A stretch of 64,000 nt of DNA from the IMG/VR virus record IMGVR_UViG_3300036846_000743, positions 162,074 through 226,073 of that record. One strand, 5' to 3'. Below are positions 11,904 to 64,000 of this stretch, one piece after another; positions within the stretch are counted from its first letter, which is position 1, and each line of letters starts with the position of its first letter. The notes under the pieces are model-generated. The model was not told the origin of the DNA, did no database searches, and saw only the letters and a program-made list of their open reading frames with translations. The position numbers were made by a program, and so were the translations under genes.

Positions 11904-12083
11904 TCACCCTGTCTTCAGCTTATCCTTGACCATGTCGGAGTCTCGCTTGTGCTGATCTTGCTGATCCAGCTCTTCCACAGTCTTCCTGGGCTGAACCGCA
12001 GCCTCCTTGGGGCTCAGTGACTTGGGATTGCTAAGATCAGGCGTGATGTCAGGACCAATCACGCCGCGTTTTTCCATGCTCAT
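11904..12083 (-). CDS. small hypothetical protein (59 aa, MSMEKRGVIGPD...)
   Basis: Below the ORF-track cutoff; ATGA overlap with the upstream stop; GGAGG RBS; fills the gap before the portal. Confidence 0.65.
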   Translation of the reverse strand: MSMEKRGVIGPDITPDLSNPKSLSPKEAAVQPRKTVEELDQQDQHKRDSDMVKDKLKTG

Positions 12084-13057
12084 GACTCGCCTCCCTGTGA
12101 TACGCGTTCCTCGATCAGCAAACTGACGTAGGTTCGACCCGTATCCGGGTCCGTGAATGATTGATCAGGCCAGACCAGCTTGTAGTCCATCGGGTCGCCT
12201 TCGACTCGAGCGGCAAACGGTCCATCGATCTGGGGGAGATACTTGTTGCCGCCCTGGTATCGCTCATCGTAAACCAGGACGAATTGCTGGTTGCTGATGA
12301 TGACCCGGTGATAGTAGGCTTCATGCAGCCCGAAGCCAGGCACGCCAAAGGTCACTTTCTTGGTCGGCGGGCTGACCGGCATGGATGCCGCTGCGACTTC
12401 GACAGGCTGCGCGCGGGACTTCTGAAAAGCACCAAGCAAACCGCCTTGCGGTTCGCCGGACTTTGTTTGAGGCTGGGTCTGGACGACCGTGTTATTGAAG
12501 CTCGCGGCCTTGATGGTTCGTGGGCCAGTTTCTGGCGGGGCCGACGGGATTGACCCCTGAACATCATTCTGGGGAACCGTGATGACCTGCTTGGGCTCGG
12601 GCGATTGTGGCGGTGCTGGAGCATCCTGGGATCGCTGGGAAGCGCCGATCAGATGGAAGGCAGCCGCACCCTGGAGCCGTACCTGCTCGATTGCGGGAAG
12701 CTGACTGCCGTGTTTTTCTGCGTATTCCCTACCCAAGGTCGCGGCCTCCTCAGCAATGTCCTGAGTAACCCGATCCAGGTCCACGACGACCGACTGGCCT
12801 TCGATATGGGGGTCGATGTGAATGCGCCTGTGCGGCGGCTTGTGCGGGTCGTAAGCCCTTGATCCACCAAGTGGTTTGGCATGCGGAACCACTACCCCGC
12901 GCAGTTGTTTCCCGCCGACCGACGACGGCATGTACCTGGCCAAGCTGGTGCCGTCGTCGAAGCCGACTTGTTCGGGCCGCTGGTATTCCGCGGATGCTTG
13001 CCGGTCCGTCTGATCGATGAACGGATGCAGCGAGATGCCCATAATGCCGCCTTTCAA
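12080..13057 (-). CDS. hypothetical protein
   Basis: About 320 aa; two domains joined by a Pro/Gln linker; start may be MGISL about 15 nt downstream. Confidence 0.7.
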   Translation of the reverse strand: MKGGIMGISLHPFIDQTDRQASAEYQRPEQVGFDDGTSLARYMPSSVGGKQLRGVVVPHAKPLGGSRAYDPHKPPHRRIHIDPHIEGQSVVVDLDRVTQDIAEEAATLGREYAEKHGSQLPAIEQVRLQGAAAFHLIGASQRSQDAPAPPQSPEPKQVITVPQNDVQGSIPSAPPETGPRTIKAASFNNTVVQTQPQTKSGEPQGGLLGAFQKSRAQPVEVAAASMPVSPPTKKVTFGVPGFGLHEAYYHRVIISNQQFVLVYDERYQGGNKYLPQIDGPFAARVEGDPMDYKLVWPDQSFTDPDTGRTYVSLLIEERVSQGGES

Positions 13058-13620
13058 TTGACTTTGGATCCTTTGCGCAGGTTATCGTCGCGCCACAGCG
13101 GTTGCAAGTTAGTCAGGGCCCAACAAGCCACAAAGTCAGGATCATCAACTGTTCTATACTTGAACTTCGCTTGAGGAATGACATGGTCAATATGCCATTC
13201 ACCATAATTATCCCAAGTCATGCCTGGGAGGAATCTCGACTCCAAATGGGTCTTGAGTTCCTGAACCGTATAGCCGACGAGCCCAAAGCAGCGGCCGCGG
13301 CGCAACCCTCGTTTGATGGTGTGGCTGATCGTCGTTGCAATACCAGTCCGGATCCGCCAATTGATGCTGCGTCTCTGCCACGCCCTCGTGTTCGCCAGAA
13401 CTTTAGCCGTGTTCTTGCGATAATATCCCCTCACAGACTTTCTGACAGAGCTGCGATAACGCTCGAGATTCGCTGGATTCGCCAACCATTGACCTTGGTA
13501 GTTTTTCTTGCATTCCTTGCAATAGGTATCCAGACCATCCTTTCGCCGCAACAACTTGTGAAAGTCGGCAACTGGTTTCGTGCGCTTGCATCGATAACAC
13601 GACTTCACAAGCACCTTCAC
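13054..13620 (-). CDS. HNH homing endonuclease with N-terminal Zn finger
   Basis: CYRC...CKEC; WHIDHVIP...NLQPLW..DNLRK; lower GC than flanks. Confidence 0.9.
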   Translation of the reverse strand: MKVLVKSCYRCKRTKPVADFHKLLRRKDGLDTYCKECKKNYQGQWLANPANLERYRSSVRKSVRGYYRKNTAKVLANTRAWQRRSINWRIRTGIATTISHTIKRGLRRGRCFGLVGYTVQELKTHLESRFLPGMTWDNYGEWHIDHVIPQAKFKYRTVDDPDFVACWALTNLQPLWRDDNLRKGSKVN

Positions 13621-46874: not shown

Positions 46875-47627
46875 TCAATCCGTGTCGATCGATCGAACGC
46901 GTTGTGCTTCTGCCAGCGTATAGGTGTCTTCCGGCGGAGGAATACCTTCCTCGATCGGCGTATCTTCCAGGCCCTGCTGCGGGGAGCTTTCCTGGATGCC
47001 ATCCTTCATGAAAAGGGCCATGATGCCAATGACTACGTCATTGGCACCAGTGTCGCGGCATGTAACCACGTACTCACCGTCATCGAGCTTGCCTGAGAGC
47101 CGCGTGCTGTAAAAAAAGCCCGATGGCTTGCCCGGCGTAGCTGTGGGCATACCCGCACGCGGGGCGACCGGCAAGACCGAAAACTTCTTGCTGGCAAAGT
47201 CGTAGAAAAAGTTGTCTTTAACCCTCCGGATCGAGTAGATCAGGACGGTCTTCCTGTAAAACCAGAACACGATGTCCACGCCGCGCCTCCCGAGTGGGCC
47301 TTCCCAGGGCGGCTGTGAAAAGGCTTTGACGCCCGGATCGGACTGGAAGCCCATGACCTGAAGCGCCGTCTTCACGTCCTGCTTCGTAATGCCACCGCAT
47401 ACCGTTTGATCGTGCGTACCGGGCAAAGGAAAGTCCACGCCAACAGTATGTGACGGGACTTCCCCGAAAACTTCAGTCTTCCATTGGTGCACCGACATGT
47501 GGTCCTTGATCTGGCCCACGTACGGCGCAATCGCGTCCACGAACGAGCGGTCGCCGGTCAGCTCCGCAAGGAGCTGACCGGGCTTGGGCACGATGATGCG
47601 CTTCTCATCACTTTCCGAGGTACTCAT
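46875..47627 (-). CDS. hypothetical protein ending in a variant tag (RVRSIDTD)
   Basis: 250 aa; overlaps the polymerase stop region. Confidence 0.7.
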   Translation of the reverse strand: MSTSESDEKRIIVPKPGQLLAELTGDRSFVDAIAPYVGQIKDHMSVHQWKTEVFGEVPSHTVGVDFPLPGTHDQTVCGGITKQDVKTALQVMGFQSDPGVKAFSQPPWEGPLGRRGVDIVFWFYRKTVLIYSIRRVKDNFFYDFASKKFSVLPVAPRAGMPTATPGKPSGFFYSTRLSGKLDDGEYVVTCRDTGANDVVIGIMALFMKDGIQESSPQQGLEDTPIEEGIPPPEDTYTLAEAQRVRSIDTD

Positions 47628-50600
47628 CCGGGATCCCCAAGGACCGACCGCGCTCCGGATCGATCGCCTGTCCCCAATTCAGGAAAACCGAGCAATCGAC
47701 CTTGAAGTGATAGGGCTTCTCCAAGCAACGCCCGCCGCGCCCGGCAGCCTCCATCTTCTTCTTGTCGTCAAAGCGGATGCCATCAAGCGTTCGTGGCATG
47801 ATCTCCACGTCATCAGACAGCGCCAAGACGACCGCTTCGCGAACCTCCTCGATATGCGGAATTTTCACCTCCAGCATAACAGCGTCATGGATCTGGAGCA
47901 CGGTCCGGAACTTGTTGCGGAACCCGTTTATCCGGAGCTGGCGCAGGTTATACATGCCCAGCAAGATAGCGTCTGCCACCAGGTTCTGGATCGGATAGTT
48001 CTTGGCCGATCGGCCCTGGTCAGCCTGGGCTGACTTATCGTCAACCCTGCCGAACCGCCGCATCCGACCGAATGCTCCGACCAGATATGGCGTCCTGCTG
48101 CCAGGCCGCGCTTCGCATTCGGCCAGGAACGAACTGGCGGCCGGATAACGCTTGTAGTAGTTATCGATCAGCCGCTGACACTCCTGTACTGAAACATCAG
48201 CACCCTCTTCGCGGCACTGTCGCGACAGTGCCTCGGCACTACGCCCGTAAGGAACGCCGAACCTCACGTTCTTCGCAGCCACGCGCAGCCCAGGCTTGCC
48301 CAGGGCCTTGAGCGCCTTCTTGTTCGGGTCGCAGCTCAGCTTAAACGCCTCGACGGCTGTCGAAGAATGAAGATCCAGGAAGTCCGGATCATCCTCCGGA
48401 AGCATGGCCCGATTGACGTCCTCGATCATCTTCTCATCCCCGGACTCCCAGGCCAGGGCGGCAATCTCGGCCGCGATGATGTCGAACTCCATGAGCACCG
48501 TGGGCACATCGTCCCATTCACCGGCCGTCACGATCGACCGGATCGGGTTCTTGTAGAGAGGCGCACCCAGGATCTTGGTGTAGTCACCAATCACCTCGCC
48601 GTCTTCCACGTGTCCGAGGATGCGCGCGTAGTCATCCTCGCGGCGCTTGGCCAGGTTCTGGAGATTGGGGCCCGAACTCGAGCAACGACCCGTCTCAACG
48701 GGGTAGAACCGGCTGCGCACCCGGCTGTCCCGCGTATTGACGTAGCTCAGGAAGCCGCCGTCGAACTCGTCCGCCTCGTCGAAGACCACACTGCCGTTGG
48801 CTTCGGCACCCATGGCCTCGCCGATCTTGGGTGGACGAAGTACCGACTGGAGCACCTGGCGGATGTAACGGATGTCCCGCAGCTTCTTGACCCGATCATC
48901 CGTGTGGGCAAAGATCCCCAGAACTTCCTTGTCCACGGCCGGCACGAGCAATTGCTTATCCCTCGGGTTAAGGGTACCCCACGATCTCGACGGCTTACCC
49001 GTAGTCTTGATCGGCACCTTGCCGAGTTTCATCTCGGGATCGGGCATTTGCGGCCGGTTCTTGCCGGTTTTCTTGTCAATGACACGACTGAACTCCTCGC
49101 CGAAAAGCCACGCGCGCACCTGTGCCGGCGAGTTGGGATTGAATGATGGCCAGTTCAATTCCTCGCGGAGCGACGTGGTCAGCCGTTCCTTGACCAGCTC
49201 GAAGACCTTGATCAGCTCCTTGCCGCGATCGACATCGACTGTCACGCCGGTCTCTTCCATCTCCAGGAAGGTGAGCCCGGCCAGCATCGTTCGCCAGTAT
49301 GGTTCCCGTGAACTCTTGTGCCAGACATCCTGATCCAGGAATCCGTCACCATCGTTCAGGGTCCGGGCGAAGTTGAACCTCCAGAACAACCGAAGCGTCG
49401 CGTCGGCGTCATAGAGTGCGTAGGGCACAAGCACGTTATCGGGGATATCACCATATCCGCCCAGGTCCCGGAGTTTGATCCCCATTTCCTTGGCAATCCG
49501 GACCTTGGCTTCCTCCACATCGACGCTCCAGCGCGGGATCGTCGTCCAGCGCATGGCCAGCTGCTCCAGATCGAAGCTCTCCGTAGCCTCGAAGACTGCA
49601 TGCGTCATGTAGCCGGTGTCGAAGCCGCCCGTGTAACGGGTCATCTCCCATGGTTCGTGCGGCTCCACGAGCTGGTTACGGTCAACAAGGTCTCGCGATA
49701 CCAGTACTGGTGCCCGTTTCTCGGCCTCGGCATTCGCATCCTCCTCGATCTGGAACTTGGCAATCTTCTTGCGGTATGCAACACCATTGATCCGCTTCGG
49801 CAGTCGTTCCCTCCTCTGCTCCTCGGTCTCGCCTTTCGGCCCTGGTTCCTGCGGCGACGGGACCGTCCAGAGCGGAGCGAAGTCAATCCCCAGAAACTCG
49901 CGGATCCAGGGAATGTCCGCTTTGAAGAAGTGACCGCCGTGGCGGGTCTTGATGTGGATCTCGCCGTTGCTATGTCGGCCATCGATCAGGCGCCGAAGCT
50001 CGCGAGCGATCAACTCGGTGGTAGGACGCCCGAGGCCACCTCCTTGATCCGACAGGCCAACACAGGTGGCCTTCATGGGAGCCCTCCTGTAGTTGCCCCC
50101 GACAGAGAACTGGATGGTTCGCAGGTACGACCCAGGATCGCCAGGATGGCGGCCATGCCATTCCGCGTCCCAGGCGATCGGCAGGTCACCGTCGATCTCG
50201 GAGTCCCATTCACGACTGGCCTTCTCAAGGATATTGTCTATCACCCTGGCCAGATGCTTCGGCGTGTAGCAGACCGAATGATCCCTCGTGCTCTCGATAT
50301 CCTGCGGCCGCTCGCCCTTGATCAGCTCGGTGAGCTGCCTGAGTCCTGATAGCAGATCGGGATACGCCTCCTGCATGCGGAAGATGTAAGCCGGGTGCGG
50401 CATGCCTATGATCTGGACCGTCTGCTCGCCGTAAGAGCCCAGATCATCGAAAGCTGCGTGGGTCTCGGCATCGAACGGCGGGAAGTTGTACTTCATTTCG
50501 ACGACCCGGCCAGTCATGTTGCCGACGGTGAAACCCTTACCCAGGACCGCCCTGATTGCCTCGGTGCCGAGACAGGCGATGAACTTGGGTCGGACCAGGA

Positions 50601-51258
50601 GGATCTCCTGCCAGAGCAGCGGCGCGCAGTTCTTGAGCCACGCCTGCTGCATGGTCCCCGACGTGGGGTCCAGCCTGTTGAACTTCACGGTGTTGGTGAC
50701 ATACCAGTTGCTCCGGGCCTCCAGCGAGACTCCAAGCTCGCGAAGCGCACGGTGCAGTGGTTCGGACGACTGGCCGATAAAATTCTGCTCAAAGGTAAGC
50801 TCCTCAGCACCTGGATGCTTACCGATGATCATGACGTCGGAGTGATAACGCGGGCCGGCAGCTTTCCTGTATTCGACCCATTCGTAGTCCTGGCTGTTTA
50901 CCGAGCTGTTCCTCGAGTTGAAGAACGGCGGCAATGACCAGCGCCCACCCCGCAGGAATGTGGCGTTGACGAACTGGCCCTTGAAGCTGACCTGAAGTTG
51001 CCACTTGCGCTTGTAGAGCGCATTGCGGTAGAGATGTTCCAGGCCGATCATGGCCGGATCGTCGCGCGCCATCTTGGCCGAGACCTTGGATTCGGTCAGC
51101 TGGAGTACGGTCCTGGCAAAGTCAGGACCAGCCGCCGGAATGAGCGGATGGTCCATTGGCACCAGATGCTTCCATGCGTAGCGAGCCCAGCGTTGCTCGC
51201 GGGACAAATTCTTGACGTCGTCGAAAGTGGTGGAATCATCGTCTTTGGTCGTGGTCAT
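47608..51258 (-). CDS. family A DNA polymerase with N-terminal family-4 UDG-like domain and 3'-5' exonuclease
   Basis: UDG-like GKHPG..E...NFIG, TNTVKF, HPAY; exo DAEW, KADI, YALYD; pol TGRCSS..PNLQN, D....E, R..AK...FG..YG, NYPIQ, IHD; start after AGGGAG. Confidence 0.92.
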   Translation of the reverse strand: MTTTKDDDSTTFDDVKNLSREQRWARYAWKHLVPMDHPLIPAAGPDFARTVLQLTESKVSAKMARDDPAMIGLEHLYRNALYKRKWQLQVSFKGQFVNATFLRGGRWSLPPFFNSRNSSVNSQDYEWVEYRKAAGPRYHSDVMIIGKHPGAEELTFEQNFIGQSSEPLHRALRELGVSLEARSNWYVTNTVKFNRLDPTSGTMQQAWLKNCAPLLWQEILLVRPKFIACLGTEAIRAVLGKGFTVGNMTGRVVEMKYNFPPFDAETHAAFDDLGSYGEQTVQIIGMPHPAYIFRMQEAYPDLLSGLRQLTELIKGERPQDIESTRDHSVCYTPKHLARVIDNILEKASREWDSEIDGDLPIAWDAEWHGRHPGDPGSYLRTIQFSVGGNYRRAPMKATCVGLSDQGGGLGRPTTELIARELRRLIDGRHSNGEIHIKTRHGGHFFKADIPWIREFLGIDFAPLWTVPSPQEPGPKGETEEQRRERLPKRINGVAYRKKIAKFQIEEDANAEAEKRAPVLVSRDLVDRNQLVEPHEPWEMTRYTGGFDTGYMTHAVFEATESFDLEQLAMRWTTIPRWSVDVEEAKVRIAKEMGIKLRDLGGYGDIPDNVLVPYALYDADATLRLFWRFNFARTLNDGDGFLDQDVWHKSSREPYWRTMLAGLTFLEMEETGVTVDVDRGKELIKVFELVKERLTTSLREELNWPSFNPNSPAQVRAWLFGEEFSRVIDKKTGKNRPQMPDPEMKLGKVPIKTTGKPSRSWGTLNPRDKQLLVPAVDKEVLGIFAHTDDRVKKLRDIRYIRQVLQSVLRPPKIGEAMGAEANGSVVFDEADEFDGGFLSYVNTRDSRVRSRFYPVETGRCSSSGPNLQNLAKRREDDYARILGHVEDGEVIGDYTKILGAPLYKNPIRSIVTAGEWDDVPTVLMEFDIIAAEIAALAWESGDEKMIEDVNRAMLPEDDPDFLDLHSSTAVEAFKLSCDPNKKALKALGKPGLRVAAKNVRFGVPYGRSAEALSRQCREEGADVSVQECQRLIDNYYKRYPAASSFLAECEARPGSRTPYLVGAFGRMRRFGRVDDKSAQADQGRSAKNYPIQNLVADAILLGMYNLRQLRINGFRNKFRTVLQIHDAVMLEVKIPHIEEVREAVVLALSDDVEIMPRTLDGIRFDDKKKMEAAGRGGRCLEKPYHFKVDCSVFLNWGQAIDPERGRSLGIPDEYLGK

Positions 51259-51310
51259 CGCAGTCTCCCTTGTCAGCCAATGATAGGCATGCGCGGGAAA
51301 GGGATCGAAG

Positions 51311-52438
51311 TCAGGCAAAGCTGGCGATGTCGATCCCCTTCGCATCGCCAGCGGCGTAGATCAGGTTCCAGATCGTTTCATAGTCGAAATTCCCAGGGTC
51401 TTTCCCGTGGGGTAAGTGGACTCGCACGGCTGCCCCACCGGTCTTGGCATAACTGTTCCCCAGGCTGGTGAAAGCCAGAGCCAGCCGCCGCTGTTCTTTG
51501 TAGTCTTGATCGGCGTCAGGATCAAGCATGAGCACCAGGCAACGGGGCTCGCTGCTGTAAGCTGTCAGGCTCGCAAGCCTGAACATCTGGTGCGCCGTGA
51601 TTGACTTGCCCAGCAGCGCCACCGCAGCGTCGCCGACGGTCCAGACGCCGGTCACGCCTTCGACCACAACGATGATCCGGCCCTGGGATGCTCGATCCCA
51701 ATTGTAGAGGATCCTGCGCTTCTTCATGCCCGGCAGGTTGTAATACTTCCGGACCCCACAGGCGCTCCAGTTCAGTTCGCCGATGTAACGGGCCTGCCAG
51801 CCGACCAGCTGGTGTTCCATCTCGATGGGGACCACGAGCCGGCCCTGGACCTGGGAAAACTCGAATGCCTTGCGGCAATAACACAGGCCATACTTGCGGC
51901 CCAGCTTGGCCGCGTCGTAGCCGCGATCCTCGATGTATCGGACCGCCTGGTGATCGAACGACAACTCATCCAGACGAATAACCCGGCCTGGCATCTCGAC
52001 CGCGACGAGCGGCCCTTCATCGCTCCGGTTACCCGGCCGTGTTGCCAGCAGAAGGTTCCGCTCCCCGGCGCTCATCTCGGCACGGAACAACCGGATCTCA
52101 AGATCCTGTCGGTTCTCGACAGCCCGGCGATCACGACCTGACAGGCAACCCTCGTTGTAGCAGTTGACCAGCCAGTTGATCGTGCGACCATCATCGTCCA
52201 GCGAGCCGTAGCAATAATGGAACCAGAGCCGCTGACGGCTATCGCCGCAGTAAGGGCAGTTGACCCTGTAATACTCGCCCGACTGGATGATGTCCCACTC
52301 CATTCGCTTTTCGACGGAGTTCCAGTGTCGGCTGGCAATGACGACCTCCTCGCCTTCGTTGGCGATGGTGATCTCGCCGAACGCGCGGCGAAGCAATTCG
52401 TAAAGGCCAGGACAAAGCGGGCCGGTGAACTGCATCAT
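51311..52438 (-). CDS. DNA primase (Zn finger + TOPRIM)
   Basis: CPYCGD...CYNEGC, VVVEG and LMLDPD. Confidence 0.85.
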   Translation of the reverse strand: MMQFTGPLCPGLYELLRRAFGEITIANEGEEVVIASRHWNSVEKRMEWDIIQSGEYYRVNCPYCGDSRQRLWFHYCYGSLDDDGRTINWLVNCYNEGCLSGRDRRAVENRQDLEIRLFRAEMSAGERNLLLATRPGNRSDEGPLVAVEMPGRVIRLDELSFDHQAVRYIEDRGYDAAKLGRKYGLCYCRKAFEFSQVQGRLVVPIEMEHQLVGWQARYIGELNWSACGVRKYYNLPGMKKRRILYNWDRASQGRIIVVVEGVTGVWTVGDAAVALLGKSITAHQMFRLASLTAYSSEPRCLVLMLDPDADQDYKEQRRLALAFTSLGNSYAKTGGAAVRVHLPHGKDPGNFDYETIWNLIYAAGDAKGIDIASFA

Positions 52439-54354: not shown

Positions 54355-55046
54355 CAGAGCACCTCACTGTAGAAATGGTCGGCCGCCTTGCGCAACTCAT
54401 CTGGAATACGATCGCCCCAGGTAGCGTCGTACGCCTCACGGTCGAAGACATACATCCGGAATGCCTCCTGTTTGAACCGCTCAGCTACATCATCAGCGCC
54501 ACCGATCGTTCCCACGCAGTAGCGGTAGAGCGGTGACAGTTCGTTGGTTGGATCGTTCAAGGCACGGCGCGCCGCAGCCTCGACGTCCATCTTGTCGTAG
54601 AGTTGGTGGACCGTGGTCGCAGCCTTGAACCGATGATCCTCCATCTTGAGGTTCTCGCTATAGACGGTGTACGCGTCTGCGAGCATCCGCGCACGCCGCA
54701 GCGACAGCGCATTGGCAAACTGGTTGGGAAAAGGCGGTGTCGGGCTCTTCCACTCCCGGAATGTACCCCGGACCAGCAGGATCGGGCTGATCGAGTTGGA
54801 GAGCGCGTAGCGGACGATGTCGAACCAGACGGGCTTGTCGTAGACCTTGCCCTGTCCATCGCGACCACCGTCCCAGCGAGGTATAGGCTGAGATCCATAC
54901 GTGCACGGCCCGCCACCTTGCTTGGTCTCGACATGCCGACGGTACTCGAGGATGTAGTAAGTTCGTACCGTGTTGGCCATGTCATAGAGATCATGGCCGT
55001 TGTCGACCCTGTGGTTGCTGCGCGTTGGCATCGCCAAGAGCCTCAA
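54354..55046 (-). CDS. hypothetical protein
   Basis: About 230 aa; translationally coupled to the helicase. Confidence 0.65.
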   Translation of the reverse strand: MRLLAMPTRSNHRVDNGHDLYDMANTVRTYYILEYRRHVETKQGGGPCTYGSQPIPRWDGGRDGQGKVYDKPVWFDIVRYALSNSISPILLVRGTFREWKSPTPPFPNQFANALSLRRARMLADAYTVYSENLKMEDHRFKAATTVHQLYDKMDVEAAARRALNDPTNELSPLYRYCVGTIGGADDVAERFKQEAFRMYVFDREAYDATWGDRIPDELRKAADHFYSEVL

Positions 55047-56587
55047 GTGAAAAACATCCGTGCAACGCCTGAACTGGAGAATGTGCCAGCTGGCTCGATC
55101 TGCACCCAGGCGTGCTTCTTGTAAACACGGCGTCGTGCCATGGCCTGCTTGTAAAACTGCTCGTCAAACTCGTCATTGAAGTCATAGACGACACCGTATT
55201 CCTTTCCGGACTCATCGTGAATACGCGAGACGCGAGACGGTCCCTGAGTCGCATCGATGGGCGAGGAACCCCCGCCAGCCCAGATCAGGGCCGCCAGGGC
55301 GTCGAATGACACACCCAAACGCCAGACGCCGGTAGCAATGGCGCCCCGGATCTTGCCTGCTTCGAAGTCCTCGCGGAGTTGCTTGCGAACAGCAACCGTC
55401 AATGGCGTGTAGTTAACCGGCAGCAACCCGTACTTGCGGTAGTAGCCCTCATCGGCCTCGTCGATGTTGCCGTAGCAGAGCGCGAAGTCAGGCATGAGCC
55501 TGGCCAGGTGCAGCAAATGTTCAATCTTATCGACCAGCACTAAGATCTGGTCGCCTTCTTCGTAGTGCTTTTGAGCGATCTTAGCGATATGCGCATTCCG
55601 GACCTTATTCGTCCAGATGCCATGCCGTTTCCTCGCTGTATCGCCCTGTAGCCCCTTCGTCGGGTTGCCACCCATTTCCACCCGCTGCCAGCGTACCTCG
55701 ATCGGTACGACCAGCTTGAGGCCAACAGCCTCGGGGTAGGTCAGCTTAAACAGAGTCCCGCCGAAGACCGCTTCCATGCGGGCATCTGCGTTATCGGATC
55801 GTCCCTCGACGGTGGCCGTGAAGCCAAAGCGAATGGCCTGGGGGGTCGTCGTGACGATATCGGCAACGTAGGTCTCGGCGAGCAGCTCGTGAACCTCGTC
55901 GCCAAGGAACAGATCCGCAGTCCCAGCGTAATTCCCCACCGACGCAGCCGTAGCCACAGTCACGCGGGCTTGCTTGGCCCGCCCGGCTCCGCGCTGGCCG
56001 ATCGACGGCTGCGGCAGATAGCGGAGCAGCACGCGGATTGTCTTCTGCACGTTGTCAGTCGACTTCACGCAGATCAGGATCTGGGCCGTAGGTAGAAGCA
56101 TTGCCAGGGCGGCGAATAGCTCAGTCTTGCCGAAACCAGCGGCAGCATCGATCACGCCGCCGCGACGAGCCTTGTAGGCCGCCTCGATGGTCCGCAGGGC
56201 TTCTTCCTGGCGGGGCCGGAACTGGAATGACCCCAGGTTGTCCCAGTGCCACTCCAGCTGCTGAGGAAACTGGGGGGAGTCATCAACATAGCAGATCTGA
56301 TAACCCTGGCTGGCGAGTATCTTCTGTACCCGGTCATAATAACCAGCCGGGAAGTTAAGGCAGCCGTAGTCATCGATGCTGAACAGCTTGCGCTGCTCGG
56401 TCTTGATCCGCTGACCGGAAGACTTACCGAACGCTTCACGGCCGTACAGCCGCGTCACGTGCCGGTACTGCATGTAGTAGGTCAGCTCGGAATAGACGTC
56501 GATCGGCAGTGGCTCGTCGAGCCGGCTAGCCAGGTAGAGCGCATTACCGTTTCGGACCAGTAACGCTTTGAGTGGCGAAGTGATCAT
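55043..56587 (-). CDS. superfamily 2 helicase (UvsW/XPB-like)
   Basis: RPRQ, AAAGFGKT, DEVH, GFTAT and Q...RVSR. Confidence 0.9.
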   Translation of the reverse strand: MITSPLKALLVRNGNALYLASRLDEPLPIDVYSELTYYMQYRHVTRLYGREAFGKSSGQRIKTEQRKLFSIDDYGCLNFPAGYYDRVQKILASQGYQICYVDDSPQFPQQLEWHWDNLGSFQFRPRQEEALRTIEAAYKARRGGVIDAAAGFGKTELFAALAMLLPTAQILICVKSTDNVQKTIRVLLRYLPQPSIGQRGAGRAKQARVTVATAASVGNYAGTADLFLGDEVHELLAETYVADIVTTTPQAIRFGFTATVEGRSDNADARMEAVFGGTLFKLTYPEAVGLKLVVPIEVRWQRVEMGGNPTKGLQGDTARKRHGIWTNKVRNAHIAKIAQKHYEEGDQILVLVDKIEHLLHLARLMPDFALCYGNIDEADEGYYRKYGLLPVNYTPLTVAVRKQLREDFEAGKIRGAIATGVWRLGVSFDALAALIWAGGGSSPIDATQGPSRVSRIHDESGKEYGVVYDFNDEFDEQFYKQAMARRRVYKKHAWVQIEPAGTFSSSGVARMFFT

Positions 56588-56692: not shown

Positions 56693-57235
56693 TCACGCGA
56701 GCCCGTCGGGTGGCCCCCCGGCGGGCTCGCTGCTTTTCAGCACGTCGCTCTGCGGGATGGCCCTCCCCGCTGGATGAACCGACACGACAGTAAACCGGCC
56801 GTATTCGCCCGGTTTATAGGGCGAAATACCCCGGAACTTGCCAGCCACTTCCATCAACGCTACGAACGTATTGACTGTGAGATCGACCGGTAGAACACAA
56901 TCTATGCCGACAACCCGCCCAGGCAGGAACGCCTCGTGCTGGGCATACCTGGGCCGGGCGTTCTCAGGCCGGTTAGGTTCTTGGATATACCGCTGCCAAA
57001 GCCGCGGGCTGCCGTCAATAGCCGGTGACCATTCGATCTTCTTGACGGTGGCAATCGGGATATTCTTGATCCTGGCGGCATGGGTCACTATAGCTCGCCA
57101 CCAGGTCTGATGGAACAGCACTTGGCCGTCAGGGGTCCGTGGGAAGCAAAATACAGTTCCCAACCCTTCACGGGGGCGCTTATCTGCACCCAAGCAAGGC
57201 AAAATAAAACGAAGCAGGACCTTGACCTCTTGCAC
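56693..57235 (-). CDS. stand-alone RAMP (Cas7/Csm3-like) protein
   Basis: VKVLLRFILPCLG; FPRTPDGQVLF...WRAIV..AA; HEAFLPG..V.I; C-terminal Gly loop AGKFRGISPYKPGEYGRFTV; AGGAGG RBS. Confidence 0.6.
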   Translation of the reverse strand: MQEVKVLLRFILPCLGADKRPREGLGTVFCFPRTPDGQVLFHQTWWRAIVTHAARIKNIPIATVKKIEWSPAIDGSPRLWQRYIQEPNRPENARPRYAQHEAFLPGRVVGIDCVLPVDLTVNTFVALMEVAGKFRGISPYKPGEYGRFTVVSVHPAGRAIPQSDVLKSSEPAGGPPDGLA

Positions 57236-57254
57236 GTCGGATCCTCCTGCCGAC

Positions 57255-57283
57255 GCACGGCGTTACGCTGCGTAACGCCGTGC
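57255..57283. repeat. perfect 14-bp inverted repeat with a 1-nt centre
   Basis: gcacggcgttacgc-t-gcgtaacgccgtgc between the IS110/Nop-like and RAMP-like genes. Confidence 0.95.
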
Positions 57284-57286
57284 CGG

Positions 57287-58312
57287 TCATTTCCCGCCCG
57301 CGACAACATCGCGATGCCGCACATAAGCAGCTGCTTCTGCGCGATCCACAAAGAAATGGTCTGGCGCGAACAAGCCTTCCTGGCGAGGACGCTTGCCCGG
57401 CGCTGCGGGCTTACCTTCGACCCGATCGCAGTAAAGCGCATCGAGCCACACCAGCCGCAGATAGTCCACGAACATCTGACTGGCTCGAAGAGCACCCTTT
57501 ACAGGGCCTTCTTCTCGCCGGTAGCGGCGCCAGAGAAAACAGCCTGGATGATCACGATGCTGGATCGGCGGTGGGCCAAGACCAAACCAGGTATCGAACA
57601 CCAGGCGGCACCGCGCCGTCCCGTCAGACTCCTTGTAGAACCCGAGCACGCTGGCCATCGTTCGCGGATCAAGGCCCAGATAAGCATGCAGCTTGGCCGC
57701 GTCGTCGTGATAAGAGATGACGTCGCCATCGCGGCGAGGCGCGCGCAGCGACACGTACCAGCGAGGATCAAGTATGACCCCCAGCAGCCGTGCCAACTTA
57801 TCCAGATGAAGATACTTGATGAATGACAGGGCCGGCCACGCCGGATGTTCCTCGAGCATCCGATGGCGAAAGTCGCCCATGCTGAAGTCTTGATCGTAAC
57901 CGGCGGCCGCTGCAATGGCGTATGCCGGATAGTCGGTATCGCCGAATTCGTGCCAGCCTCCCAGGGCCGGGTTCAGCCCGTCAGCAGCCGAATCACGCAT
58001 CCGAACCAGCATGAGCTTCGGATTGTCACGCTCGGCGCGAGTCCGGCCAACAACTGCCGGACTCGCAACTTCCAACCGTAGCAGATCACCGCTCCTCTTG
58101 CGGCCGTGCATCGCACACAGAGCCCGGGCGTTGCCGACGCTACCGACCATCCGGATATGACGGGCGCGCTGACAAGCACCGTCCCCGAGAAAGCTCTCAA
58201 CAGGTGCGTGCGTATTGGTGGCGACGCGACCGCCATCCACATACCACACAAGGCCATCCTGCGCCGTGTGCATCTTGAGAACCTGATCCTCGAGGACTTC
58301 CGGTAAAGACAT
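57287..58312 (-). CDS. IS110/Nop-domain-like (Tas-like) protein, apparently catalytically degenerate
   Basis: HPAWPALSFI.....LARLLGVILDPRWY...AKLHAYLGLDP...GALRASQMFVDYLRLVW; no DEDD tetrad recognisable in the N-terminal domain. Confidence 0.55.
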   Translation of the reverse strand: MSLPEVLEDQVLKMHTAQDGLVWYVDGGRVATNTHAPVESFLGDGACQRARHIRMVGSVGNARALCAMHGRKRSGDLLRLEVASPAVVGRTRAERDNPKLMLVRMRDSAADGLNPALGGWHEFGDTDYPAYAIAAAAGYDQDFSMGDFRHRMLEEHPAWPALSFIKYLHLDKLARLLGVILDPRWYVSLRAPRRDGDVISYHDDAAKLHAYLGLDPRTMASVLGFYKESDGTARCRLVFDTWFGLGPPPIQHRDHPGCFLWRRYRREEGPVKGALRASQMFVDYLRLVWLDALYCDRVEGKPAAPGKRPRQEGLFAPDHFFVDRAEAAAYVRHRDVVAGGK

Positions 58313-58345
58313 GTGGTTACCCCCATGATTGGACCGATAAAGACT

Positions 58346-60478
58346 TCATCCGGCCAGTCGCAGGACACCGTCGAAGAGAACCTCGAAGGATGGCTCGTGC
58401 GTGACGAGCAGGCATTGAATGCCACGACTCTCGGAGAGATCGCGCATCTTGCCGATCGCCACTTCCAGGCATGCAAGGTTCCTCTCGTCAAGCGACTCGG
58501 TCGGTTCATCCAGACACAGCAGCCCAGCCGTGCCTGCGAACAAGGAGTTTACAGCGACACGGAAAGCCAAGGCAAGCAGGACCTTCTGACCTTCACTAAG
58601 ACGCTGCGCGGGCGAAACCGTACCAGCATAGGCCCCACGCAGGAATGTAGTCGTGAAGTTCAGGCCATCACCCAGGCTCACCCGAAAGTCGGCATCGAAC
58701 GACTCCAGCAGCTCGTTGGTGTCGTCCGCCAAGATCTCCAAGTAATTATGCGCCACGATCTTGGGCAGGCGATCGTGGTGCATGACCTTGCGGACCTCGC
58801 TCAGGTGGTAGACCCAGAGACGGTCCATCTCGGCCTTGCGCTCGGCCGCTTCCAGCCGCCCTAGCATATCCTCGTCGGACTTCAGGGCGTCCTTGATGGC
58901 ATGCAGCTCACCTTCGGCCCTGACGACCAGCTGACCGAGCGGCTCGACCTCGCGCAGCGCTTCCCGAGCCTTCTTGACCGCAGCCTCGTCGGGAGCCGTG
59001 CCTAGCGCATCACTGCTCTTGACGTGCTTCAGACTGATCTCGTCCAGCTTGCCGCTGCTCCGGCTCACTTCCTTGCGCAGATGCGTAACCCGGATCTCGG
59101 TCTCGGCGATGGCCCTGTCCATGGTTATCCCGGCATCGATCATCTCGCGACAGGTGTCGGGATCAGCAACAGGAACTTCCCCGTTGCTGGCTGTGAAAGC
59201 CGCCTGGTCAAGAGATAGTGTGATCATGCGCTTGGCATGATCCTGGGACCAGCCTTGCCACCGCGCGTGCTCGCGACTGTAACCGGCGTGTTCCTCCTGG
59301 ACCTGAGTCGCATCCTTGAGCGCCTTCTTCAAGCCAGGCAGTTCAGTCTTGTAGAGCTTAACTTTCTTCAGGATCACATCGGTCTCCGTGCCGCAGGTCG
59401 GACAGACCTTCGGTTCGTCCTTGAACCATTTCAGTAGCTCTTCGCGCGTCCTGATCGAATGCCCCAGCTCATCGATCTTCTCCTTCACCACCTTTTCGCC
59501 CGGATAGCCCTTGGGCTCTTGCGGCTCTGGATGTGCTGTCCGTTCCGTTTTCAGGCCATCTTCTCGGGCCTTGAGCGCTTCTTCCTGCTCCCGCCGTTTC
59601 TTGGCGACTTCCCATTTGGCCAGGGCCTCCTGGGCGGCATTGATGTCCCCGGCGGCGCCCGCTTTGGCCTGTTCGAGTTCAGCCTGCTCCTGCACAGCAG
59701 CCGTCAGCTCTTTCTGCCTGGCCTCCAGGTCGGCTGCCAGCTCATCGACCTGCTCGCCCAGGGAAACGACGACCACGCGATCACGCCGCCACTGTTCGTC
59801 GCGACTGACCAGCGCCTGGGCCGCCGGGACGTCGAGCTTGTTGATCACGGCGTTGTCCTTGGCGATCGCCGCCACCAGCTCATCCCGGCGACCCTGGTTG
59901 CGCGCGACCCGCGCACGCAACGTGTCGATCTCCGGATTGGGCTGTGCCGGGTTGACCCGCTTGATCTCGGCATCCAGGAGTTTGTAGATAACATCGGCGC
60001 GCGCCAGGTCGAACAGCTGGCCGAAGGTCTTGTTGCGCTCGGCTGGCGTCTCGTCGATGAATGCAGCCATGTTCCGCTGCGGGACGAAAATGTACTCGGA
60101 CAGGATACGCTGATCCACTCCGAGTAGATCCAGGACCGCCGCGGTCACGGCGTTGTCGCCGTCGATCGCGTCGCCACTGCCGATCCGGCAAGTACTGACC
60201 CCTCGACGTAGTACGCGGATAATCTCGACCTTGATCCCGTTATGCTCGAAGTTGAGCACGATCCGGGACCGCTCCCGGTTATCTGCCAGCTGGCAGATAT
60301 TCTCGGTCTTAGTCCCCGCGTTGTCGATTGTGCCCAGGATGGCGCCTCGTATCGCCTTAACAACATTGCTCTTGCCAGAGCCATTCGGCCCCACGATGCC
60401 GTTGAGCCCGTGATGCCAGACATGCTTCAAATGCCGATGCTGGCAGAAATTCTCCAGGACAAGCCGTTCCAGCTTCAT
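58346..60478 (-). CDS. SbcC/Rad50-like ATPase
   Basis: GPNGSGKS, coiled coil with CPTC hook, LSEGQ, LDEP and VTH. Confidence 0.92.
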   Translation of the reverse strand: MKLERLVLENFCQHRHLKHVWHHGLNGIVGPNGSGKSNVVKAIRGAILGTIDNAGTKTENICQLADNRERSRIVLNFEHNGIKVEIIRVLRRGVSTCRIGSGDAIDGDNAVTAAVLDLLGVDQRILSEYIFVPQRNMAAFIDETPAERNKTFGQLFDLARADVIYKLLDAEIKRVNPAQPNPEIDTLRARVARNQGRRDELVAAIAKDNAVINKLDVPAAQALVSRDEQWRRDRVVVVSLGEQVDELAADLEARQKELTAAVQEQAELEQAKAGAAGDINAAQEALAKWEVAKKRREQEEALKAREDGLKTERTAHPEPQEPKGYPGEKVVKEKIDELGHSIRTREELLKWFKDEPKVCPTCGTETDVILKKVKLYKTELPGLKKALKDATQVQEEHAGYSREHARWQGWSQDHAKRMITLSLDQAAFTASNGEVPVADPDTCREMIDAGITMDRAIAETEIRVTHLRKEVSRSSGKLDEISLKHVKSSDALGTAPDEAAVKKAREALREVEPLGQLVVRAEGELHAIKDALKSDEDMLGRLEAAERKAEMDRLWVYHLSEVRKVMHHDRLPKIVAHNYLEILADDTNELLESFDADFRVSLGDGLNFTTTFLRGAYAGTVSPAQRLSEGQKVLLALAFRVAVNSLFAGTAGLLCLDEPTESLDERNLACLEVAIGKMRDLSESRGIQCLLVTHEPSFEVLFDGVLRLAG

Positions 60479-61587
60479 ACGCTCTCCTCACTTGATGCTT
60501 CGTAGAACTCATTTCTCATGGCCTCCAGCTCGATCCGCGGATCGGCGACTTCCAGCAGCCGTACCGATGAATCCCGCACTGGGCCGGGCTCGCAAACCAT
60601 GTGAACAGCACCGGCCAGGCCACGATCCGCAACCTGTCGACGAGCTGTAGCCGACGGTGCCCGTTCGTCGCGACGCCGGCTCCGGTGCCGCAGGAACAGA
60701 TGACAGCGATCTTCGAGTGCATTAGCCAGCTTGGCACCAAGGCCCTCGATGTCATCGTAGTAGGCAATATCGATCACGGCCCGCTTGATCCCCTCGCCGT
60801 CCAGGGGCAAGTCACGGCGCGCCAGAAAGGCTTCAGCTTCCTGATGTGTCGTGATCTGGTAGCGGCGAATCGGCCGCGTATCGAGATTGATCGACTCGAC
60901 ACGGAACGGGTTCGCATCGTTATAGATGGCATAGAACCGTTTTGTCTCTTCTTCGGCCACATCGCGGACGTGGGTTGAACCTGGCGAAAGCGCCACGCCC
61001 ATTGACCCATTCAGGGCCTTATAGCTCAGCTCTGTGTGCACGTGATAGTCACCAGCCAGTAAGTGCATCGCGAACGGTAACTGCGCCATCGACAGCTCGG
61101 CCTGGCGCACGTTGCCCATGAATTCGTGCCATACCTGGTGACAGAGCAGGAATGATCCTGACGGGGCCTGGAGGGTAGCATACGTCGCCATGAACTCGGC
61201 AGGCCGCATGTAGTCGAGCCCGTAGATCATGAAGTCGTCCACGTCGTACACCAGACCGTGCAAGTGAACCGGATCTGGATGGATCGAAGGCCAGTCCTGC
61301 CGGCCATCGTGCTGCCCGAGGACATAGACGACCTGTACTTCGTCACCGCTGAGCTTCTCGAACTGATCACGCAGGAACTTGATCGTCTCGGGCCGCGGCG
61401 TCGGCTTGTCCAGGATGTCTCCGCCCAGCGCCAGAATATTCGCTTTGTGTTCGCAGCAGAACCCAACGATCTGCTCGAACGAGTGCTGAGCATCCCCAGT
61501 GATGCCTCGGTACTTCCAGGCGCCGGTTTCGTCGAAATGCAGGTCCGCCGCGAACACGATGGACGGACGGTCGAGCTTGGTCATCAC
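60475..61587 (-). CDS. SbcD/Mre11-like nuclease
   Basis: ADLH, GGDILD, GQHD, CHQ, GDYH and PGS. Confidence 0.9.
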   Translation of the reverse strand: MMTKLDRPSIVFAADLHFDETGAWKYRGITGDAQHSFEQIVGFCCEHKANILALGGDILDKPTPRPETIKFLRDQFEKLSGDEVQVVYVLGQHDGRQDWPSIHPDPVHLHGLVYDVDDFMIYGLDYMRPAEFMATYATLQAPSGSFLLCHQVWHEFMGNVRQAELSMAQLPFAMHLLAGDYHVHTELSYKALNGSMGVALSPGSTHVRDVAEEETKRFYAIYNDANPFRVESINLDTRPIRRYQITTHQEAEAFLARRDLPLDGEGIKRAVIDIAYYDDIEGLGAKLANALEDRCHLFLRHRSRRRDERAPSATARRQVADRGLAGAVHMVCEPGPVRDSSVRLLEVADPRIELEAMRNEFYEASSEESV

Positions 61588-61886: not shown

Positions 61887-62011
61887 TTGACAGTTTGGCC
61901 GCTCCCTGGTGACCATGAGGATACAGCCTGGTTGGGCCCTCCAAAGTGCGCCGACTGGATGGCGCTCCCCAACAAGGATGGACCATGGATGTTTCGCACG
62001 GAGGAAGTCTC
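61887..62011 (+). promoter_or_regulatory. putative csrA promoter and GGA-rich leader (CsrA-binding sites)
   Basis: TTGACA at 61887 with a weak -10 (GACCAT); seven GGA at 61919, 61957, 61976, 61980, 61987, 62000 and 62003. Confidence 0.65.
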
Positions 62012-62260
62012 ATGCTAGTCCTATCGCGAAAAATTGGCGAGCGGATCCACATCAATGATGATGTCGTCATCACGGTGATCCGGATCCAAGGGGACAAGGT
62101 GCGCCTCGGTATCGAAGCCCCTCGCATCATCCCGGTGCACCGGGCAGAAGTCCTGGAACGGATCAGGATCGCGGCGGCCCTGGCGCCACAGCCCGATACA
62201 TCGGCTCCTGGCATGCCTGCATCTGAAGAGCGGCCTACCAGAGTGGCTCGCCGTCCCTAG
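62012..62260 (+). CDS. csrA: carbon storage regulator CsrA/RsmA
   Basis: MLVLSRKIGERIHINDDVVITVIRIQGDKVRLGIEAPRIIPVHRAEV; GGAGG RBS. Confidence 0.95.
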   Translation: MLVLSRKIGERIHINDDVVITVIRIQGDKVRLGIEAPRIIPVHRAEVLERIRIAAALAPQPDTSAPGMPASEERPTRVARRP

Positions 62261-63065
62261 TCTGCTTGCGGAACCACGCATAATACTGCCGCAGGGACTG
62301 TTCGTCGTGCACCGCAACATATCGAATGGGATGGTAGATGAGGAAGTCGCGGCGCAGAATCTTCGGGCTCGGCGCCAGTCGCATGTGATTGTGCTGGTTG
62401 GCGTAGATGGGCGGCTTGGGATCATCCATGCTGCCCCAGGTGACGACGTACGCGCCGAGAATCTGGGCGACCCACGAAATGTATGGGTCAGGCCAGAGTG
62501 GCCATCCCGCGCAGCCATCCGGCACCAACAGGCTACGTTCGACCATCGCATCGACCAGCCCGCGAGACATCCAGTTGATCGCGTAGAAGATCGTTTCTGA
62601 ACTCAGGTCTACGGGCCCGAAGATGTTCCTGGCTTCGGGCAGCCAGCGACCTAGCAGCTGGGGCACCTGCTTCCAGTAGTTCTGATAGTGGACCCTATCA
62701 CGGACCCCGAGCAGATCGATAGCTGTGAGATCCATCTTGGCGATTGCCCACTCGTCGATGCCGCAACCGATCGGGAGTGCGTCATCGTCGAGGCAGAGCA
62801 CATACCTGAAGTCGATGCCGTCGTTGAGGGCAAACTGGATGCCCTCGTAGTTCTTGAACCCTGATAGATGCTTCTGCCCGGGAAGCCGCGATGCGATCCG
62901 AAAGTAATTATCCTCACGGCGAATCACCGGATCGTCGCGCTCGAGTGTGTCGTCCACACAGACGATGGCGCACGGCAGTGTATGCGACCAGCGAATCGCT
63001 TCCACATGATCCTGGATGATACCCTTCCTGTTGGTCGTGAAAACGACCAGGGTTTCTACCTTCAT
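62235..63065 (-). CDS. putative GT-A glycosyltransferase
   Basis: VCVDD and VLCLDDDALP; ATGA-coupled to the GT75-like gene. Confidence 0.6.
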   Translation of the reverse strand: MKVETLVVFTTNRKGIIQDHVEAIRWSHTLPCAIVCVDDTLERDDPVIRREDNYFRIASRLPGQKHLSGFKNYEGIQFALNDGIDFRYVLCLDDDALPIGCGIDEWAIAKMDLTAIDLLGVRDRVHYQNYWKQVPQLLGRWLPEARNIFGPVDLSSETIFYAINWMSRGLVDAMVERSLLVPDGCAGWPLWPDPYISWVAQILGAYVVTWGSMDDPKPPIYANQHNHMRLAPSPKILRRDFLIYHPIRYVAVHDEQSLRQYYAWFRKQTRDGEPLW

Positions 63066-64000
63066 GACTCCCATCCTGCCTCCTTGAATTTGTCACACCA
63101 CTCCAGGATCCAGCCGCCGAGCTGTGGTATGTATTGTCGCAGCTGTTGATCACGAACCTGCACAACATGAGCCCCTTCGAGATACGTGCCGATGTGACTC
63201 ATGCATCGCAGTGGCGTATCGTCGCTTGGCCCCAGCGGCACGTCGTCGATGATCCTCCAGAATTCCTCATTGGCCCTGATACCGGGTGACTCCCCGACCA
63301 GGTTATCCATGGGCCGCGATGCCTTCATGTGATTGACGATCGGCTTACCCACCGAACAGGCCAGATCCAGGTGGCGCATGCACTTCTGGGCGATCACGCC
63401 GCCCCAGATATCATCAAACCTGCGGAATGGCATGCCTTCACCATTGCGCGGGAAATAAAGCAAGGGGGTGATCTCGCGGCGAAATGCGATGTTCATGCCG
63501 CAGAGTGGCCAGTACTGTCGCGGGCTCATCACCCGCGAGTGCCGGTAGATATTCTTCATGGGCTTCCAGGGCTTGTAATATCCCTCGGGCGTCCAGTTGG
63601 TCAGCTCGTGAACCGCATCACGGTCCGGGATCGTAGCCCAGACGCCCATGTTCAGTGAGGTTGTCATCTCGCCGAGAGAATTCTGACGGAGCCGCGGCCG
63701 CCGCCGACCATCATCATCAGTGCCGTAAGGCATCCCTCGTGGTATGAAGCCAGGGATCGAAGTCGTCCACCGATCGGTGTGATAGAGCGCTGCCACATGC
63801 TGTTCCACGAAGCTGGCACGCGCAGCCTCGATCAGCTGGTCATGATCAGCGCCCTTGCGGTGCCAGCTGGGATCAGCCGCCAGTGCACATGGCAGACAGT
63901 CGTCGTCGAGCGTGATGACGACATCGGCCCCATGCTCGAGCACCGCGGCCAGAAAGCCCCAGGTCTTGATGCCCGAGTCGCAGCGGGCCAACCAGCCTGG
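63062..64000 (-). CDS. reversibly glycosylated polypeptide / UDP-arabinopyranose mutase-like (GT75); 5' end outside window
   Basis: DSGIKTWGF, TLDDDC, PRGMPY, GVW..IPD.DA, CGMNIAFRRE, RFDDIWGG and H.KAS....NL..E..G; frame stays open to 64000. Confidence 0.85.
   Translation of the reverse strand, partial: PGWLARCDSGIKTWGFLAAVLEHGADVVITLDDDCLPCALAADPSWHRKGADHDQLIEAARASFVEQHVAALYHTDRWTTSIPGFIPRGMPYGTDDDGRRRPRLRQNSLGEMTTSLNMGVWATIPDRDAVHELTNWTPEGYYKPWKPMKNIYRHSRVMSPRQYWPLCGMNIAFRREITPLLYFPRNGEGMPFRRFDDIWGGVIAQKCMRHLDLACSVGKPIVNHMKASRPMDNLVGESPGIRANEEFWRIIDDVPLGPSDDTPLRCMSHIGTYLEGAHVVQVRDQQLRQYIPQLGGWILEWCDKFKEAGWES

Follow-up and report, generated by a model that had tools for sequence, protein, structure and literature searches.

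The window analysed in this study comprises 64,000 nucleotides and is the last 64 kb of the 226,073-bp IMG/VR virus record IMGVR_UViG_3300036846_000743. The record comes from a soil metagenome, and its completeness was estimated by CheckV as 100%. The gene under study, designated X, is an open reading frame (ORF) on the minus strand at 57287..58312, exactly where the first-pass annotation had placed it. The ORF that follows it at 56693..57235 (-) is designated Y. X lies in an operon whose genes are all on one strand in the order SbcD-like, SbcC-like, X, Y, ResIII/SF2 helicase, an unknown protein of 230 aa, DnaB-like helicase, primase and family-A polymerase. A UvsX-like recombinase gene is found farther along, past the polymerase. 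The features of SbcCD (Rad50-Mre11) are present upstream of X, namely an SMC-type ATPase head, a CxxC zinc hook (C359/C362, invariant in the alignment) and a metallophosphoesterase partner, and SbcD is syntenic in all loci compared. The operon is a recombination-replication module of the SbcCD/helicase type from a phage without a cultured relative. Its polymerase shares at most 25% identity with T5-like polymerases, and neither X nor Y gave a tblastn match among 50,697 phage records. The product of X appears to be a TasR-like protein that has lost its catalytic residues and has become a fixed member of this module. The features are collected in Table 1.

Table 1. Features in and around gene X (positions in the window; residues refer to the X protein).
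Feature	Position	Strand	Description
Family-A DNA polymerase	47608-51345	-	1245 aa
SF2 (ResIII) helicase	55043..56587	-	Pfam ResIII 8.5e-16; PHROG 16 1.9e-38
Y	56693..57235	-	180 aa, Csm3-like Cas7 RAMP, disordered C-terminal tail (159-180)
Inverted repeat	56697-56730		14 bp, GC-rich; overlaps 3' end of Y
X-Y spacer hairpin	57255..57283	-	Perfect 13-bp stem, CAG loop, no T-run; followed by AGGAGG and GTG start of Y
X	57287..58312	-	341 aa, ATG start, catalytically inert TasR/IS110-like protein
X residues 116-341	57290..57967	-	Short helical hairpin replacing the Tas coiled coil, then Nop/Tnp-like helical domain
X C-domain motifs			GGWH (118-121), D127, Y131, HP (156-157), DPRW (182-185), YLGL (211-214), W242, F259, R262, W289
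X terminal helix			E326/H333
X residues 1-115	57968..58312	-	RuvC/YqgF-like RNase H-fold domain without conserved acidic tetrad
Intragenic stem in X	58036..58067	-	12 bp, 8-nt loop, codons about 82-92, over the conserved ASP...R segment
SbcC-X spacer	58313..58345	-	33 nt, G-rich ribosome-binding stretch
SbcC/Rad50-like ATPase	58346..60478	-	Pfam SMC_N 9.6e-17; PHROG 77 4.3e-34
SbcD/Mre11-like metallophosphoesterase	60475..61587	-	Pfam Metallophos 4.1e-5; PHROG 1649
CsrA homologue	61946-62260	+	Pfam CsrA 6.2e-22; just upstream of the SbcD operon
309-aa ORF	63062-63991	-	Pfam RGP (reversibly glycosylated polypeptide) 6.1e-16

X is a real gene. At E<=1e-3, 70 homologues were obtained from a 90%-clustered database, and a profile search yielded 1055 clusters at 50% identity. 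Nearly all members of these clusters are 280-366 aa long, and several of the homologues reside on contigs of 211-246 kb. The family is basic (median pI 8.7), as is that of Y (9.7). No member matched any Pfam model at E<=1, X had no match in PHROGs or PADLOC, and the sequence-profile search against the PDB returned only chance CsgG matches at E about 1. The AlphaFold2 model of X, calculated with a 43-sequence alignment, had a pLDDT of 92.3 and a pTM of 0.91. It predicts a b1-b2-b3-a-b4-a-b5 domain (residues about 10-115) followed by helices. In the Foldseek search against the PDB, TIGR-TasR came first (E 1.2e-2, probability 0.99), followed by ISCro4, IS621 and TasH, and IS110 transposases led the search against the AFDB clusters (E 1.6e-3, probability 1.0). 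The N-domain alone resembled poxvirus resolvase, YqgF/RuvX, phage RuvC and the RuvC domains of Cas12, TnpB and Cas9. The best match of the ESM-Atlas shape search (TM 0.56) was a cluster from candidate phyla radiation (CPR) bacteria with PF02371; language-model features also pointed to viral clusters with PF02371, which is taken as a lead only. The Foldseek search against BFVD returned nothing significant. According to the model, X combines the RuvC-like domain and helical Tnp-domain fold of the IS110 family with a Nop-like C-terminal domain as in TasR.

The sequence motifs agree with this architecture. The four N-terminal strings that the first-pass annotation had read as RuvC-like spacing fall in the model on the RNase H-fold elements which bear the catalytic residues in RuvC-type enzymes. 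LKMHT forms strand 1 (residues 12-16), IRMVG strand 4 (52-56) and LEVAS strand 5 (79-83), and RDNP is predicted at a short helix after strand 5 (92-96). The IS110-like pattern noticed by eye in the C-terminal half is also there, SFI-KYLHL-..LARLL..ILDPRWY....KLHAYLGLDP at residues 163-216, and two independent tools align this region to Tas proteins. The NCBIfam model TIGR_Tas_endo aligns to residues 151-214, and hhalign pairs the C-terminal stretch with PGVGP....A.L / LWAYIGIDKP of TasH. TIGR_Tas_endo was the sole family model matching at E<=1e-3, in 8 of 43 members with a best value of 6.1e-7. The X of the window reached only 12.5 bits (E 0.11) with this family HMM (NF052498), against a cut-off of 100 bits; the control SpTasH scored 118.9 bits and matched NF033542 at 9.7e-13. 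The hhalign comparison of the X family with a single TasH and with a 22-member TasH alignment gave E 0.03-0.04, which is not significant, with the right motif aligned. The Pfam families that the first-pass annotation had proposed for checking, PF01548, PF02371 and PF01798, were unmatched at E<=1 across the 43 members, as was NF033542, and PF02371 found nothing at E<=10 in the six-frame translation of the genome. The description of X as IS110/Tas-like holds in that its fold is related to both, and is refined in that X is closer to TasR than to the IS110 transposases. We regard X as a distant homologue of the Tas/IS110 proteins, nearest to TasR, and not as a member by curated threshold. A flap-endonuclease reading, suggested by the T5 order SbcC-D14-FEN and by weak Atlas matches, was rejected. 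The strand meander of X is RNase H-like and not PIN-like, and a conserved acidic cluster is absent.

The loss of acidic residues, proposed from the single sequence, holds for the whole family. Over 198 aligned members, no column in residues 1-115 contains D/E at 0.8 or above; the most acidic ones are E8 (0.70), E81 (0.67) and E94 (0.64). The DEDD catalytic tetrad of the IS110 type is thus not found in X. Conserved basic residues occur instead, K13 on strand 1 (K/R 0.86) and R54 on strand 4 (0.91). In PateTasR and CsTasR, arginines are reported to occupy the pockets of the inactive RuvC domains (bioRxiv 10.64898/2026.09.09.750476), and K13 and R54 recall them, although the equivalence of the residues is inferred. 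At positions 217-225, after GL.P, where the catalytic serine of IS110 is located, no Ser or Thr is conserved. Both catalytic centres are lost in the family alignment. The glycine-rich hairpin (PGIG in IS110/Tas) has been replaced by the non-glycine residues of IKYLHL, as the first-pass annotation had noticed. The coiled-coil segment of X occupies about 40 residues (116-155) in two 12-aa helices, vs about 77 residues in TasH, and the model suggests a central coiled coil truncated to about half length.

The C-domain retains a set of polar residues, H121, D127, Y131, H156, D182, R184, R262, E326 and H333, each conserved in at least 81% of the 198 sequences; W289 and the aromatics of GGWH and DPRW belong to the conserved set as well. 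Such a His/Asp/Tyr/Arg cluster could be a non-canonical active site, in which case X would be an enzyme, for example one that processes RNA or DNA ends independently of metal, like the Y/H dyad with which dual-repeat Tas cut pre-tigRNA. For TasH, processing by a Y/H pair located in the Nop domain is known (PMC13421893; bioRxiv 10.64898/2026.09.09.750476). However, the conserved polar residues of X are spread over about 210 residues, many of their conserved neighbours are Trp, Phe or Pro as is typical of a structural core, and the aromatic position ahead of H333 can be Y, F or W. An active X is improbable on this account.

X occupies a constant place in the operon. All 29 loci retrieved with X have the order SbcD-SbcC-X-(Y)-helicase-230aa-DnaB-primase, at X identities down to about 25%; with PolA included, the fixed order is SbcD-SbcC-X-(Y)-SF2 helicase-DnaB-primase-PolA. 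When loci were retrieved independently via SbcC, X stood immediately downstream of it in 73 of 80, and this position was constant across SbcC identities down to about 25%. The start of the longest X ORF lies at most 18 nt from the SbcC stop or overlaps it in 71 of these 73 loci. The SbcC-X gap of the relatives is accordingly 0-18 nt or an overlap, vs 33 nt between the SbcC stop and X here. The stop/start overlap suggests translational coupling of SbcC and X. In the other seven loci no X was detected, and their SbcC proteins are the most divergent of all (23-27% identity). Several of these loci carry unrelated ORFs of similar size behind SbcC, and ORFs of 320-389 aa fill the X slot at L104:6512-7546, L107:6634-7596, L085:7103-8272 and L090:7421-8491; these could be unrecognisably diverged X genes or replacements.

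The claim that X is a fixed operon gene and not a mobile element is borne out by its single copy, its constant site and the absence of joints. The precise presence and absence that would mark an active insertion sequence was not seen: 73 of 80 loci have X at the same site, and contigs of the source-sample metagenome contain no joint skipping X, as a deletion or excision would leave. It is hardly credible that an insertion sequence of the IS110 family, decaying or still mobile, lies here in the operon by chance. X is a single-copy gene, intact and conserved in more than 1000 clusters, without non-coding ends, DEDD tetrad or catalytic serine and without a match to PF01548, PF02371 or NF033542. 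The copy number, the fixed site, the lost residues and the lack of joints refute such an element for practical purposes.

A guide RNA was searched for around X and in the whole genome. The flanking gaps are of the lengths claimed by the first-pass annotation, 33 nt (58313-58345) and 51 nt (57236-57286). They leave no room for a flanking guide RNA here, nor do those of the relatives, which are shorter, and a non-coding bridge-RNA end of the IS110 type is absent from these flanks. Neither tandem repeat finding (TRF) nor k-mer clustering over the 226 kb detected repeats, tandem or interspaced, whose period is non-coding, and no TIGR array was found near or inside X. The only tandem arrays in the genome have periods that are multiples of three and lie inside coding regions; in-frame repeats with periods of 42, 45, 78 and 153 nt were seen at about 91.8, 96.4, 139.2 and 155.4 kb. 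No Rfam family at gathering thresholds and no tRNA (ARAGORN) was present in the 226 kb, and the genome has no CRISPR array. The largest stretch of the genome (G000) that seems to be non-coding lies outside the window at 11963-13174 (L007:2960-4200); it is 1.2 kb long and has a GC content of 0.52. Within it are two pairs of short hairpins, identical and in tandem, and also a 13-bp stem closing a loop of 18 nt. As a guide source this stretch was rejected, since nothing in it is TIGR-like and most of it is not conserved in the nearest relative. In the relatives without Y, the gaps after X hold a small helical ORF and an ordinary terminator.

Two local structures were found at X itself. The hairpin in the X-Y spacer folds at -30.6 kcal/mol by RNAfold (z -3.3), and of the relatives only some (L005, L015/L019 and L020) have a comparably strong hairpin between the two genes. 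The stem inside X has a sliding-window fold z of -4.3, and it folds more stably than its synonymous-codon controls (z -3.0 here and -5.3 in L018). Across 26 loci it showed a weak trend (median in-gene percentile 0.21), and its significance is uncertain. Neither structure resembles a tigRNA unit.

The neighbour Y, which the first-pass annotation had missed, starts 51 nt after X at a GTG preceded by AGGAGG. Its homologues have 160-181 aa and support the 180-aa GTG start vs the call of the record (P0340, 131 aa, from a later ATG). The model of Y (pLDDT 86.5) matched 118 PDB structures at E<=1e-3, at the top of which were Csm3, Cmr subunits, Cas7-11, the type VII Cas7 and the type IV Csf2; in the AFDB it matched Cmr6 at 3.2e-8. 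Y accordingly has the RRM-based RAMP fold with a glycine-rich loop and is a RAMP of the Cas7 type. No Pfam match, including RAMP families of the PF03787 type, no NCBIfam or PADLOC match and no CRISPR-cas context were found for Y. The inverted repeat at the end of Y covers codons of the disordered tail and is terminator-like on the plus strand, and contigs of the source-run metagenome break exactly there. Y stands beside X in 59 of 80 loci. Two complete genomes carry X but lack Y altogether, and at one locus Y is present while X is not. It is thus SbcC, and not Y, that goes constantly with X. The presence of Y beside X is the best indirect hint that the ligand is RNA or a single strand.

The same pair of genes raises the thought of an anti-defence decoy, in which a dead Tas and a Cas7 copy would sequester the tigRNAs or crRNAs of the host or of rival phages. 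X and Y are both catalytically stripped relatives of guide-RNA-binding proteins, as such a decoy would need. Anti-defence genes are usually found in variable islands, however, whereas X strictly follows SbcC in the replication core, and each of the two genes occurs without the other. PADLOC matches are also lacking, and a decoy function is very unlikely.

The first-pass annotation had proposed a nuclease-dead RNA-binding scaffold whose RNA is supplied in trans. In such a model an RNA guide, encoded at another site of the phage or by the host, would direct the nuclease-dead X to DNA. X would then act like the dead TasR repressors, or bring SbcCD and the helicase to a target. The fold closest to that of X is TasR, and TasR proteins with a dead RuvC are proven RNA-guided repressors; the same preprint treats the arrayless TasR branch in dense viral genomes as an open question (bioRxiv 10.64898/2026.09.09.750476). 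X conserves the terminal helix with which PateTasR reads box C (E326, an aromatic residue at 330, and H333), a Cas7-like RNA-binding RAMP adjoins in 59 of 80 loci and a CsrA gene is nearby. Nevertheless, no array or candidate guide was found in the complete 226-kb genome, and its largest non-coding region shows hardly any conservation in the nearest relative. In all characterised Tas proteins, the 2:1 Tas:tigRNA complex is formed by the coiled-coil dimerisation element, which appears to be cut to about half length in X. The HhH-like glycines are lost, and the gene belongs to a core operon of DNA metabolism and not to an accessory island. We consider a trans-guided X unlikely.

The reading that we prefer is that X is an arrayless, catalytically inert TasR-like accessory that binds nucleic acid and serves the phage SbcCD/helicase recombination module. 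Its probability is roughly one in two; the identity of X alone, apart from its function, is highly probable. X would be a vertically inherited relative of the TasR/IS110 enzymes in which a shortened coiled coil joins an N-domain of the RuvC fold to a Nop/Tnp-like C-domain. In a large clade of uncultured jumbo phages it became a fixed core component of the recombination-replication module. Encoded directly behind SbcC, often via an overlapping stop and start, it would be made stoichiometrically with SbcC. The dead scaffold would be kept for nucleic-acid binding and would give non-catalytic aid to the SbcCD nuclease and the adjacent SF2 helicase, probably with no dedicated guide RNA. Ends, hairpins, branches and R-loops are examples of the DNA or RNA-DNA structures that it may recognise. 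Y may be a frequent single-strand-binding helper of X and could coat a single strand.

The analysis establishes the fold of X, the loss of its catalytic residues, its immobility, its coupling to SbcC and the RAMP fold of Y. The reading of its function rests on architecture and gene context, and several points weigh against it. The binding of X to SbcCD, DNA or RNA is inferred from these two sources, and gene adjacency and start-stop overlap are circumstantial. The sole complex prediction, for X with Y, gave a score of 0.01, which is no answer and counts as evidence neither way. The profile-profile comparison with the TasH alignment was not significant (E 0.04). Stem-loop TIGR units carry almost no sequence signature and could have escaped the array searches. 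The conserved polar set of the C-domain could serve catalysis or the recognition of RNA and not be part of a passive scaffold. It is also conceivable, if quite doubtful, that X and Y together form an arrayless RNA-dependent targeting module which passes a site to the Rad50/Mre11 nuclease and the SF2 helicase. They would then load trans-encoded, host-derived or nascent RNA, or sense R-loops.

A few observations concern the surrounding genes. The CsrA gene is found at the same place in the distant relatives L002, L003 and L010. The polymerase counterparts in L002 and L005 have an N-terminal UDG-family domain (Pfam PF03167). In relatives, a PfkB/CTP-transferase gene lies near the RGP-type ORF, which hints at functions in sugar-nucleotide metabolism or in DNA or glycan modification.

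The locus makes the question on arrayless TasR-like proteins in dense viral genomes concrete and experimentally approachable, and parts of RNA-guided systems seem to be reused in phage DNA recombination. If X works without RNA, the scaffold of an RNA-guided effector would clearly have been taken over for DNA recombination. If X uses RNA, a new guide source and a new effector coupling would have to exist. The targeting module, if true, would be an undescribed RNA-directed recruitment of a nuclease, with components taken from Tas and CRISPR systems and a permanent place among the core replication genes of jumbo phages.

Among the known systems, the IS110 bridge-RNA recombinases (IS621, PDB 8WT6/8WT9; ISCro4, 9T56) differ from X in having the DEDD tetrad, the catalytic serine, a bridge RNA end, mobility and Pfam/NCBIfam IS110 matches. 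Tex and Spt6, in which an inactive RuvC/YqgF-like domain is followed by helical helix-hairpin-helix (HhH) domains, match only part of X and show no sign of close kinship. The Cas7 RAMPs of the Csm3/Cmr4 type are accompanied by a CRISPR array and other cas genes and match the Pfam RAMP model, unlike Y, which belongs to a phage replication module and has X on one side and a helicase on the other. TasR itself (TaTasR, PDB 9MTY; Faure et al. 2025, PMC12045711) differs from X in its catalytic acidic residues and its TIGR array. In X, moreover, the coiled coil appears truncated, the glycine hairpin is lost, the score is 12.5 vs 100 bits and the gene belongs to a DNA-recombination operon. PateTasR and CsTasR are catalytically dead stem-loop TasR proteins (Xu et al. 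2026, bioRxiv 10.64898/2026.09.09.750476). Like them, X keeps the RuvC fold with basic residues in place of the catalytic ones; unlike X, they have arrays and dimerise. The same preprint reports a divergent arrayless TasR branch without coiled coil or array in densely packed viral genomes (bioRxiv 10.64898/2026.09.09.750476). This description fits X, which is likened to the branch by description only. The text of the preprint makes no mention of a linkage to SbcC/Rad50 or of a RAMP/Cas7 neighbour. Dead TasR proteins and an arrayless viral TasR branch are already reported. What appears to be new is that X is tightly coupled to a Rad50-type ATPase, that it has its place in the replication core of a large clade of jumbo phages, and that its neighbour is Cas7-like.
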